From Marsupella aquatica (taxonomy: Eukaryota; Plantae; Marchantiophyta): a DNA stretch of 64,000 bases. Below, piece by piece: positions 56,730 to 64,000 of the stretch (the stretch's first letter is position 1; each line of letters opens with the position of its first letter). The position numbers and the translations under genes are program-made. Below the pieces are notes generated by a model. It worked only from the letters and a program-made list of their open reading frames with translations. It searched no databases and was not told the DNA's origin. Where the stretch lies: positions 8,765,832 through 8,829,831 of the forward strand of contig OZ316897.1 in assembly GCA_973895155.1 (NCBI GenBank). Reading direction: 5' to 3'.

Positions 56730-57560
56730 ATAAGTGTTGGGTGTGTAAGTGCATTCCGTGGTTAGGTGTAGGTGTGGTTAGGTGTAGGCCAGCACACGTG
56801 GATGTTATCAGGGGCTCATGCCATTGCGATTCCCCTAACTACAGACTGTTCATCAATGCGATGTATAAGTGCATTCTGTGGTTAGGGGGTGTATGTGTGG
56901 TTAAGTGTAGGCCAACACACGTGGATGTTATCAGGGGCTCGTGCCATTACAATTCCCCGTAACTACAGACTGTGCAACAATGCAGTATATAAGTGCATTC
57001 CGGTTAAGGAGGTATAGGTGTGGTTAAGTGTAGGCCAGCACACGTGAATGTTATCAGGGGCTGGTGCCATTGGGATTTCCCTAACTACAGACTAAGCATC
57101 AGTGCAGTGTATAAGTGCATTCTGTGATTAGGAGTTGTAGGTGTGGTTAAGTGTAGGCCAGCACACGTGGATGTTAGCAGGGGCTCGTGCCATTACGATT
57201 TCCCTAACTACAAACTGTGCATCAGTGCAGTGTATAAGTGCATTCTGTGGTTAGGAGGTGTAGGTGCGGTTAAGTGGAGGCCAGCACATGTGGATGTTAT
57301 CAGGGGCTAGTGCCATTGCGATTTCCCTAACTACAGAGTGTGCATCAATGCAGTGCGATTCCTGGGACATCATGTACTGTTCCCTTGTGATTTTCCCTAA
57401 CTACAGTCAGCCGGGCACAGGTGCGGGTGTATAAGTGCATTCCATAGTTAGGTGCATGCTGGCAGACGTAGAGTTCATCACGGATTCGTGCCCTTGCAAT
57501 TTTCCCTAATTATAGTCAACTGTGCATAAGTGTAACATGTATAGGTGCAATCCATGGTTC
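56730..57560. repeat. 123-bp tandem array (5 good units plus 2 degenerate), with a G-box in four units
   Basis: CACGTG at 56795, 56918, 57041 and 57164, an exact 123-bp period; CACATG at 57287. Confidence 0.9.
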
Positions 57561-59104: not shown

Positions 59105-59950
59105 GTCACCTCTCGATTAGTTGGTGCAGGAGCTTTGCCTCTCGTTGCGCTCTCTCCTTAATTCTCTCGCTCAGTTTTGCGAGCGCTCAATTCAGTCGTC
59201 AATTCGTTCGCAACGATAGCCTGTAGTAGTTTGCAGCATCACCTCTCGCTGCAATGTTGGTGCAGGAGCTTTGCCTCTCGTTGTGCTCTCTCCTTGATTC
59301 TCTCGCTCAGTTTTGCGAGCGCTCAATTTACTCGTCTTTTCGTTCGCAACGATAGTCTGTAGTAGTTTGAAGCGTCACCTCTCGATCCAATGTTGGTGCA
59401 GGAGATTTGCCTCTCGTTGTGCTCTCTCCTTAAATTCTCTCGCTCGGTTTTGCGAACGCTCGTTTCAGTCGTTAATTCGTTCGCAACGATAGTCTGTAGT
59501 AGTTTGAAGCATCTTGCTGTAACTCCGCGCAGCAATTTGTTGGCTCTGCGAATATATTAACACCCTCGCGATCTCTTGTTCAAGTCATTCGCAACGACAG
59601 CAGGAGTTCAAGCATTTTGTTGAAGCTCCGTGTAGCAGTCTTCTTAGCTCGATGAATTAACACGCTCTCGTCGTTCGCAACGATGAAAGTAGGTTGAAGC
59701 ATTTTGTTGAAGCTCCGCGCAGCAATCATCTTAGCTCTATGAGTTAACGCTCTCTATACCTCGTACAAGTCGTTCACAACAATAGTCATAGGTTGAAGCA
59801 TTTTGTTGAAGCTCCGTGCAGCATTCTTCTCAGCTCTATGAATTAACGCTCTCTCTCGTTTAAGTCGTTTGCAGCGACAGTGGTAGGTTGAAGCATTTTG
59901 TCGAAGCTCCGCGCAGCAATCTTCTTAGCTCTAAGAATTAAGGTTCTCTC
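59105..59950. repeat. Two adjoining, related tandem arrays (~135-140 bp x3, then ~90-100 bp x5) upstream of the SYCP2-like gene
   Basis: ttggtgcaggag-tttgcctctcgttg x3; aagcattttgttgaagctccg(c/t)gcagca...cttagctc x4-5; both share cgttcgcaacga. Confidence 0.85.
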
Positions 59951-60391
59951 TACTTCAAATCGTGCTTAACTACATAGGTCCAAGCATTTCCCCATGCTCC
60001 CTCGAAGAAATCGTGGATCCACTCAGATCGATTCTGTCTCGTTTTCGTTCGCTACTGCATCTAGTTTTAAGAATTTTGTCAAAGCTGAGCACAGAAAGCT
60101 TACCTAGCTTGCTTTACTAACGCTTTGTCTGTGCACCGGCATTTCGAGCATTCAGTGATCGTTTAATTTGACGAACTAAATTTTCTGCAAATGATGGCTC
60201 CTGCAGTTCATTGACATCTCTGCGGCAATCGGGACTCTCGGTTATAGTGGTCTAACAAGCAACTGAAAACAATTTAGAATCTGGCCCGGTTTCTTCCCCT
60301 GTCCCGTGCGATTTCTCCCTGCGGACAAAGGCCCTGAGGACGGTCGGAGCTACACTTTTGTTAGAGAGATCCCTCAATTCACTCGGGAATC

Positions 60392-63300
60392 ATGAACAGG
60401 CAGAGGTTCTCCCAAAAGTCCCTGACGCACGATGATATTGATGAGGAAACTGTAAAAGAGATGGACATGGTGTTGAAGACTATTTCCAATGCAGAAGCTG
60501 ACGTTTCTGATGCAGTTTTAGAACAGGTTCGAAGATTCCTTGAAATGGTTAGCGAGGTAAGACGACTGAGAAATCGCAAAACAGTGCACTATACTTCTTG
60601 ATGTCCAGCTTAAATAACGTATGTCAAACAGTGTAGATGAAAAATCGCCGCATTGTCATCCCTTGGAGTGGGTTGATAAAGACTTTGTGTCAACTGTTCA
60701 CATCGCCTTTGTCCTTCTTGAGAAGCCGTATGTTATGTTTACCGTGGTATAATCATTTGTTGTGTCATATTATAACCAATTCTGTGAACCATCGCAAGAA
60801 TGAGCTATTGGAACTTACGACATTGAAATGTCTTCAGGCCTGGGCACAATCACCAACACTCGGGAAACTCCTCGACATTGGAATTGTTCGAACCCTAGCA
60901 ACAATATATGACAATTTAATTCAAGCCGACTATGGCAGATCCGGAGTCTTAGCATCTATACTGGAGCTCTTGTTTATTGTCGAAGACATGAGTGACAGTG
61001 TCGAAGGTTGTTTGGATTATACTCCATGCGCTCTCTCTGTGTTTTATTTAGAGCCAGGTTTGATAATAAAATGAATTCGTAGGCGCACACTGCCGTAGGA
61101 ATCTGAGGCATACTCAATTGACTCGAAACTTCCGCGCTGTTTTGATCGGCAAGTTGGTCTCTCAGACCGGCCAGCTAGCACGCAATCCATATACTAGTTT
61201 AAGAAGCCATATCAAATTTGAACAACTGAATTTGGTCTCCCCCTGTCATGACGAGGCAGCCATCATATCTGTTCAGCTCCAATCTCTCCCGGAATCTTGA
61301 TTTAAAGAGCTTTTGTAGTCCAATCATTTGAATTAGGTGATCGAGGATCTCGCTTTACTCTGCATTGCAGCTATATATCCTAGCCTGGCTGGAAATACCG
61401 AAGCTTCTGAATATTTGACAGTGAGCCTGCAATAATGAGCCTGTTGATTCGCTACATCAGTCTGCGCATTAGCGAGTAAAAGCGTAATGTCTCGTCCAAT
61501 GCTTTAGGGCTGTGAAGAGTCGACCGAAACTACAATAATTCGATTTGAACATCTATGAACTCGCCTCTGCCCGATGTCCTCGAAATACGATACAGGAAAT
61601 CCGACCAAGGTTACAGGGCTGTATTCCCCGCTATATTCACAACTAGCATAGTCTAGCTAGAGTGCATCAATGTAGCTGGAAGTTAGTATACTAGTAATCA
61701 TCACTGGTCTTACCTAGGAATTTCCTTGGAGAGTCTTCATTAGAAGCACAGTTCAGGAGGCGCGTGATGACAAAATTCTTGGATGCTGTCAATCAACCTC
61801 TGAATATCTAAGGAAACCTTACTCGATCTCGTTTGGCCTATTTGACCTTTGCCTCAGGAAAGATCGAATGTGGAAAACTCTTCTTATTCCGTCTGATGGC
61901 CTTTGTCACTGCGACTAGTAATACGCCGTCATTGAAGTTACAACGAGCTGTTATAGAGACGATCTGTGCTCTCGTGACCAGGTCTCCAGAAAACCAGCAG
62001 GCAGTTCTCGACCAAAAGGTGGCATGGTAAAGAATTCTGACATTGCTCTCGTGGACTTTTACAATGTTTGAAAGTGTCTTCCCTAATTAGGCAAGCAGTC
62101 CACGCGGCGTCGAATGGAGTGAATTGATGTTTATGGAGGGAAATCTCGTGAACTGATTTGGGAATCGAGCAGACCAGAATTTATTCATAGCGATAATAAG
62201 TTCGATGATCGATCTCAATCATGGACTTCAGTGAGACTTGATTCTTGTGTACCATCAATCACCTGTCAGCTACAAGTTATTCAAGGTGTTTCTTCCAAGA
62301 TGCGGCGACTTTCAGCTGCAGGCTAGTATCACGGAGATATTTTATCGGCTTGCGAAGAAAGGGCCACATCTATTGCACTTCATACAGGATCGAGATGTCA
62401 AGAAATGTATTGAGTCGCTGATACAATCCAAGAAGCCCGACCTGTTGTTAGAAATCAGGAAAATTGTGACGCATCTCAACGAATCCCTCGGCTGCCTCAG
62501 AAGGTAATCAAATCAGTTAATGAAGTGGATCTGTTAAGAGCTTGGTTTAAGAGCTGAAAGAACTTTAGCCCGTGTCGATGTGTAACTGCGAGTTTTTGTG
62601 TTTTCTCCTGTCACTGGCAGTTCTAGATATGAGCGATTAAATACTCTGAATCGATCGTTACATGCAAAATATAAACACTGTAGGAAACGTTACGCTAGAA
62701 GTCAATTTTGGATGGCAATAAAAATGAAAATCATGACCAAAGTTCGGAATTGGGTTGTTAAACACTGTTATGATGTCTTGTTACAGTGTTTACTCATTTC
62801 TAGCGGAACAAATCTTAATAAATGGCCACGAAATGATCACGAGCGACAAGTGGGTAAACATTGGACGAGCTCAGCTAAGCTTCTACATCTCAGGACTCCC
62901 AGACTCGGTAACATTACGTTTTTATTAGTCACGTTATCGGAGATCAGAGAACATTGTTGCCGCATTGATGTAGCTCTGACTGGCTCGTAAGCACTCTGCT
63001 GGTCGAATATGCTGATTTTCTGATTACTGTAGGGAGTCGAATGGCATTTTCTGGTCATATTCTGATGTTTATTGTCAATCGTCAACGTGACCTGATCATA
63101 CTAAGACTCCTAGTAAATATGTACAAATGCAAACAAAGGTCTGTACCGACGAAAATTCGATCATGGATGTGCAATATGAAGACATTATGGAGGTCAAAAG
63201 TGAGTATCTTGCAATTAAGACTTAGTCCCGTCTCCAATTTATTGTATCGAAAGGCTTAGACCACATTTGAGGCTATCTTGAATTTGATTGCACTGAAGTA

Positions 63301-64000
63301 ATCTGTACGCGGGTCGGTACGTTGTCTCGATGGGACGAGGACTTGTTCGATAACTAAGCCTGGTCTGGAACGTACCCCAGAACGTAGAACTAGGTTCTAA
63401 CTGATGAGCTGAAACGGAGTTATGCAGTCTGTATGTAGTCTGAGGAAATTATGCCAATACTCTGAAGCTCTGAAGCACATAGCTAGTACTTTAAATGACT
63501 AATGTAGCCAGCCTATCAACATGCAATTGATCCTCCGGACGTGCTAGAGACAAAATCTAAATTGTGATAGTGTGACTGTGCAGAATCATCTCCAACTCTC
63601 CTGGAAATACTTGTGCAGAAGAGAGCCGGATTTTCTTCCTTTAAGGTTGGCCATGTGATCACGTACAGCTGCCTTGAGTTGTAGCAATTCAATTTCAGTT
63701 TGTCATTCTTACTGGGGATATACATACCAGATGAACAAAAGTTGATGTACTTAACACCCGACTTAACAGCTTCGTGCTCCCCTCTGATCCGGCTATGTAC
63801 AGGCGCTAGGCCAGGAGAGAAGCTCGTCGACCATCCTCAGAACGCAAATGCACTTTAACCCAGCAGGTTTGCAGACCAATACTTTTGAAAAAGTTGATTT
63901 ATAAACACTATATCCGGCATCTGCTATACTGTACTTCGCTCTGGACCTTCACATGCTTCGTATACGTGGTCTGGCTGCGCGCTCTGTTTACTGCCAGCTC
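60392..64000 (+). CDS. SYCP2/Red1-type meiotic chromosome-axis protein with N-terminal ARM-like and PH domains; 5' part, continues off the right edge
   Basis: Proposed exons 60392-60556, 60637-61006 (internal intron unresolved), 61858-62026, 62270-62503, 62787-62907, 63139-63199, 63584-63645 and 63803-63866 are phase-compatible at GT-AG borders. Translation includes LFIVEDMSDSVEGKIECGKLFLFRL, CGDFQLQASITEIFYRL, IRKIVTHLNESLGCLRSVYSF and WVNIGRAQLSFYISG. Confidence 0.75.

Follow-up and report, generated by a model that had tools for sequence, protein, structure and literature searches.

A liverwort gene that very probably encodes a long ASY3 with an SYCP2-type ARM-PH head

Meiotic axis core proteins and the Marsupella locus

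The core proteins of chromosome axes in meiosis polymerise via a C-terminal coiled coil, which in plants is paired with ASY4, and recruit the HORMA protein ASY1 via a closure motif; Red1 and ASY3, at least, also use a motif in their disordered region to bind REC8 cohesin (2026 preprint). ASY3 lost its ARM (armadillo-like) and PH domains in Spermatophyta according to Tromer et al. 2021 (PMC8131943), a study that had Marchantia polymorpha among the species in its ARM-PH search path, and in the 2026 preprint the domain is given, unqualified, as "(missing in plant ASY3)". Here we describe a gene on the plus strand of a window of 64,000 nucleotides (nt) from the liverwort Marsupella aquatica (contig OZ316897.1). 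This gene is very probably the ASY3 orthologue of this liverwort lineage, carrying about 380 extra N-terminal residues, the ARM-PH head; its first eight coding exons lie within the window, between positions 60392 and 63866. A reading of the same stretch made from its sequence alone had held that angiosperm ASY3 is without the ARM-PH module, as both publications state, and had implied that a land plant with the module was new; this novelty has to be given up, since loss of the head in Spermatophyta was already published. Retention of the head in non-seed plants has been known since 2021, and our addition is a further liverwort orthologue, apparently unannotated, whose second exon has a shifted acceptor site.

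Several described systems can be compared with this locus. The closest are the long ASY3 orthologues of Calypogeia, Marchantia, Riccia, Diphasiastrum, Selaginella and Adiantum, which have the N-terminal domain in common with the window gene and the same intron positions. Arabidopsis ASY3 (Q0WR66, 793 amino acids), rice PAIR3 and maize DSY2 have a C-terminal coiled coil orthologous to that of long ASY3 (Pfam ASY3-like positions of about 617-787), but begin at about the point where the ARM-PH module of the long proteins ends, and are without the roughly 380 residues encoded by the window. Mouse SYCP2 has the same two-subdomain fold (ARLD and SLD, structure 5IWZ) and shares motifs with the plant head over about 200 residues, yet only about 17% of residues are identical, its coiled-coil partner is SYCP3 where the plant protein has ASY4, and the plant head on its own falls below the Pfam SYCP2_ARLD and SYCP2_SLD models and is filed under PF26290 (DUF8079), the precomputed family on the proteins of Calypogeia fissa. 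Yeast Red1, Rec10 of S. pombe and the kinetoplastid proteins KKT17 and KKT18 have the same layout of ARM-PH head, disordered middle and C-terminal coiled coil, although their divergence is too great for any direct match at sequence level here; among them, Red1 assembles into homotetramers and KKT17/18 have their role at kinetochores. Generic ARM proteins such as beta-catenin, importin-alpha and CNOT9, unlike the plant head, have the ARM superhelix only, with no PH sandwich fused to it.

A probable long ASY3 and its SYCP2-type head

A search with exon 4 (77 amino acids) against 1.84 billion representative proteins (phmmer) gave 13 matches. The full-length relatives, of 1069-1266 amino acids, are from the liverworts Marchantia, Riccia (two species) and Calypogeia, the lycophytes Diphasiastrum and Selaginella and the fern Adiantum, and head-only models of 322-397 amino acids come from the zygnematophyte alga Spirogloea, a set of taxa that fits the statement of Tromer et al. 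2021 on loss in Spermatophyta. The orthologue of Marchantia polymorpha is Mp2g06990 / MARPO_0021s0152, with 1129 amino acids. In all seven full-length relatives tested, the closest one included, the C-terminus matched the Pfam ASY3-like family PF20435 at 34-60 bits (cut-off 25.7), over model positions of about 600-787 of 793, which correspond to the coiled coil, and several of them are labelled [quoted passage not shown] in UniProt. The sequence-only reading had left two options, a long ASY3 orthologue or a separate paralogue; with an ASY3-like coiled coil on all full-length relatives, it is the long orthologue that we retain. The window gene's own protein has no entry in the protein collections searched. 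Further homologue searches returned, among the matches listed, only two C. fissa proteins for the C. fissa head, only the query itself for the Diphasiastrum coiled coil and, for the nine-sequence plant alignment, only its own member sequences. One exon-4 match, to a 2168-residue insect NB-ARC/TPR/ankyrin protein (E 2e-7, in four stretches), was rejected as a repeat-driven false positive. Two gene models carry an unrelated domain on an ASY3 head, Selaginella EFJ15601 (GDT1) and Spirogloea P0013 (cyclophilin), and both fusions are probably annotation merges.

The likeness of the head to SYCP2 emerged from a profile of nine plant sequences of the long ASY3 type, searched with HMMER against all sequences of the PDB. 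Its one significant match was the mouse SYCP2 N-terminal domain 5iwz_A (E 2.7e-7, profile 104-302 against chain 125-330), and the two have in common the strings LL..I.D.S..GK,.Q..a.......l...P, GD..LQ..I.E.l.R,.R.f.nl.N..LG..R.VytF and WIDF..G...LSFYI. Five blocks that had earlier been aligned with human SYCP2 are all present in this profile alignment to the mouse protein, in the same order. When exons 1-6 of the window were in turn compared with the profile, they matched at ascending positions with E values from 4.5e-7 to 1.4e-43, against 0.12 or worse for reversed-sequence controls (Table 1). Exon by exon, searches of Pfam, and a phmmer search of the PDB with exon 4, produced noise only (TPR_LAA1_C, Cullin_Nedd8, thymidylate kinase), the exons being too short, so that the SYCP2 likeness is visible only via a profile or a structure. 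The homology to SYCP2 that the profile points to is at the level of the superfamily only.

Table 1. Coding exons of the ASY3-type gene in the window, their encoded parts and their matches to the plant profile and to the closest relative, Calypogeia fissa (blocks are those of the earlier alignment with human SYCP2).
Exon	Position	Strand	Start phase	Length and content	Profile positions	E value	Identity to C. fissa
1	60392..60556	+	0	165 nt, 55 codons, with the start codon; ends in phase 0; first ARM-like helices	5-49	4.5e-7	62% (amino acids)
2	60799..61006 (alternative start 60838)	+	0	ARM-like domain	65-126
3	61858..62026	+	1	169 nt; ARM-like domain; block 1 (second half) and block 2	128-179	3.4e-28	87% (amino acids)
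4	62270..62503	+	2	234 nt; last ARM-like helices and linker; block 3 (CGDFQLQASITE) and block 4 (first part)	182-258	1.4e-43	79%
5	62787..62907	+	2	121 nt; PH/SLD strands 1-4; end of block 4 (SVYSF) and block 5 (W..G...LSFYISG)	260-300	1.6e-19
6	63139..63199	+	0	61 nt; PH strands 5-6	302-319	3.8e-7	match to residues 310-326 (tblastn)
7	63584..63645	+	1	62 nt; a PH strand		0.12 (weak)	67% (residues 328-348)
8	63803..63866	+	0	64 nt; last PH strand		no match	71% (residues 347-374)

The predicted structure of an orthologue points in the same direction. An AlphaFold2 model of the Diphasiastrum protein, computed with the profile's sequences as alignment, predicts residues 1-372 as a confident domain (predicted local distance difference test mostly 85-95), in which about 14 helices occupy the part up to residue 250 and are followed by eight strands (258-348) and a capping helix (351-373). 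Residues 373-1004 are disordered in the model, and 1007-1171 make up a single long helix. Foldseek ranked 5IWZ first among PDB entries (E 1.7e-11, TM-score 0.65, target-normalised), the next entry being a designed ARM protein at 5.7e-5. With VIA-align the superposition of the model on the mouse SYCP2 N-terminal domain holds across both subdomains, at Z 26.7 and a root-mean-square deviation of 4.6 Å for 329 of 372 residues over model positions 5-370, 11 Z units above the generic ARM and HEAT proteins, which reached Z 13-15.5 over residues 4-249 only and left the PH part unmatched; there was, then, no better match to an unrelated ARM family. In a protein-language-model atlas, which we take as a lead only, the neighbours were clusters of SYCP2_SLD/ARLD, of Red1 and of DUF8079 with PH_30 (Euglenozoa), and this agrees with profile and predicted fold in favouring the SYCP2/Red1-type ARM plus PH domain that had been proposed. 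Sequence profile and orthologue model together thus support ARM-like repeats packed on a PH (Spt16M-like) beta-sandwich as one N-terminal module, as in mouse SYCP2. On this model the window would cover the entire ARM-like helical subdomain (exons 1-4) and seven or eight of the PH strands (exons 5-8), exon 5 corresponding to strands 258-291 of the Diphasiastrum model and aligning to 5iwz_A as far as residue 330; the capping helix and the remainder of the gene fall past position 64000, and exon 9 of C. fissa would map just over the window end.

Gene model and competing explanations

The open reading frame (ORF) list and a check by hand gave eight short coding exons with canonical GT-AG borders and compatible phases, with no in-frame stop in any of them, so that the earlier proposal of small ORF pieces splicing in phase into one protein stands. 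The exon singled out in that proposal as the key PH exon is identical to exon 5; the accompanying remark was that the ORF track did not show it in this frame, and a list with a minimum of 20 amino acids contains an ORF at 62755-62928 around it. The closest relative is a 1211-residue unnamed product (P0001) of the leafy liverwort Calypogeia fissa, which was also the best exon-4 match. Aligned with the window by tblastn, its residues 1-374 fall on the eight exons, collinearly and at 59-79% identity, and exon by exon the window gene is 60-87% identical to C. fissa ASY3. Exon 1 has an ATG and a donor site (GAG|gtaaga) homologous to those of the C. fissa gene, both splice sites of exon 4 are conserved, and exons 3 and 7 agree with C. 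fissa in length and splice sites. More generally, the splice sites of the window are canonical and conserved, with GT or AG at the homologous C. fissa positions, the exon-2 acceptor excepted, and exon lengths are either equal (165, 169, 234, 121, 62) or differ by a multiple of three (61 against 58; 64 against 70). The introns are partly alignable between the two, which indicates that the window species and C. fissa are close. In C. fissa we also observed two long ASY3 copies, P0001 and P0014, 86% identical and on separate contigs, which may be homeologues.

The exon-2 acceptor is the point at which the two genes part. Where C. fissa has its acceptor gcag|GTT, the window has ccaa, followed by deletions of 1 nt and 4 nt, so that the gene must use an acceptor downstream. 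Two in-frame candidates both leave phase 1: caag|AAT at 60799, which gives an exon of 208 nt, and tcag|GCC at 60838, which gives one of 169 nt. We prefer 60799 because the long form has a 12-bit advantage over the short one in the match to the family profile (83.6 against 71.4 bits) and retains the invariant leucine of the "CLQ" helix; the tblastn alignment to the homologue also extends back to 60820. From the sequence comparison this assignment is still uncertain. Relative to C. fissa the 5' border of exon 2 is shifted and about nine residues are missing. Two side observations concern the same region: in two "organism B" DNA runs, 60672-61167 and 61664-62159 (exons 2 and 3 with their flanks) have a depth 3-10 times that of their neighbours, and variant contigs there show an in-frame skip of 33 nt in exon 2 (60892-60926) and a skip of 592 nt in intron 2 (61129-61722). 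Organism B may hold additional diverged copies of exons 2-3.

A number of observations weigh against the identification of the gene as a functional long ASY3 with an SYCP2-type head. Besides the destroyed acceptor and its two deletions, none of the four public sequencing runs that contain the stretch is an RNA run: all gave DNA contigs, with the introns present and no splice joints. The closure motif, the disordered region and the coiled coil lie outside the window, and we infer their place from the orthologues. The link to SYCP2 runs through a profile and a model of orthologues, the window exons having been compared with the profile singly, and exons 7 and 8 match the closest relative only. 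Moreover, the Pfam models of the SYCP2 domains, SYCP2_ARLD (PF18581) and SYCP2_SLD (PF18584), which the sequence-only reading had named for a check, matched none of the single exons at E <= 10 and none of the full-length orthologues at E <= 1.

Part of this evidence could also be read as erosion of the head. The ASY3 head may be under remodelling in this liverwort lineage: the ancestral exon-2 acceptor has been lost, deletions have shifted the frame twice, and the acceptor now in use makes the second or third helix shorter. Such a change could represent an early and still functional stage of the N-terminal erosion by which the ancestor of seed plants lost the entire ARM-PH module, or give rise to head-less or head-altered isoforms. 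We give this possibility a slim chance. Somewhat less likely again is a copy that is decaying or recently inactivated, be it a long ASY3 in the course of losing its N-terminal head or a pseudogene: the change of the C. fissa-type acceptor from gcag to ccaa with the deletions after it, the lack of RNA among the four runs and the dispersed-repeat and tandem-array sequence immediately upstream of the ATG could all be expected of such a copy, but its eight exons are stop-free, its remaining splice sites are both canonical and conserved, and the in-frame acceptor at 60799 restores the helix with its invariant leucine and a better profile score. In addition, the ratio of nonsynonymous to synonymous substitutions (dN/dS) between window and C. 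fissa is 0.32 (dN 0.12, dS 0.39; 339 aligned codons), which speaks against decay as well.

A separate paralogue consisting of ARM and PH domains only, uncoupled from the ASY3 coiled coil, with a short ASY3 encoded at another place in the genome, is very unlikely. The window ends within the PH domain, so that the linkage to the coiled coil lies outside it, and the short Spirogloea models are indeed head only. Head and ASY3-like coiled coil are nevertheless found in one protein in every full-length land-plant relative, the gene of the closest relative runs on for ten further exons (locus GCA_965154635.1, CBCUJL010000001.1), and DNA similarity to it continues to 63937, near the edge of the window. 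That the gene encodes an unrelated armadillo/HEAT-repeat protein, its SYCP2 likeness being the common ARM fold, can be discounted almost entirely and is already contradicted, for although the helical part gives Z 13-15 with beta-catenin, CNOT9, APC and WAPL, and single exons gave weak TPR or Cullin noise only, 5IWZ alone spans both subdomains, the sequence profile matches SYCP2 alone, and the relatives' C-terminus is ASY3-like.

Motifs past the head and upstream repeats

Returning to the long ASY3 orthologue, motifs that would follow the head can be described from its relatives. Beyond the window, a conserved K-x-S-[IV]-G motif follows the PH helix at a distance of 25-40 residues in seven of eight orthologues, and further downstream, in their disordered region, they have a motif (D/S)xIETDS. 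Both K-x-S-[IV]-G and IETDS are also present in Arabidopsis ASY3 (sequence from PMC9957857), in the same order and with the first near the N-terminus, and a closure motif of Arabidopsis ASY3 is reported near the N-terminus (2026 preprint). The pattern suggests that K-x-S-I-G is a candidate HORMA closure motif. Since the motifs keep their order in Arabidopsis ASY3, the seed-plant protein can be suggested to be the long protein minus its head, with the cut immediately ahead of the putative closure motif. Under a strict pattern, a CIM-like L-R-S-K-L was observed in Selaginella and Adiantum only.

Taking the orthologues together with what is established for the family, the coiled coil of the long protein would pair with ASY4 and polymerise into an axis filament that recruits ASY1. 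The ARM-PH head, in turn, would most likely be a protein- or chromatin-docking module on this axis, one that was lost in seed plants and kept in non-seed plants, this liverwort included. That the ancestral axis core protein of land plants had an SYCP2/Red1-type ARM-PH head is confirmed in one more bryophyte genome, and the ASY3 of about 800 residues in Arabidopsis, rice and maize is hence a truncated derivative. Retention of the head is easily overlooked, as the unqualified wording of the 2026 preprint shows. There is also a modest practical value, since bryophyte orthologues, for example Marchantia Mp2g06990, offer a plant system for the genetic study of ARM-PH head function.

Upstream of the gene the window contains minisatellite-like tandem arrays at 57007-57375, 59120-59528 and 59574-59949 (123 nt x 3, 136 nt x 3 and about 95 nt x 4), and several small upstream ORFs are tandem repeats read through. 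At 60300-60348 many contigs of all four DNA runs break or branch, with depth rising to 105-699; a dispersed repeat ends here, some 45-90 nt upstream of the ASY3 start codon.

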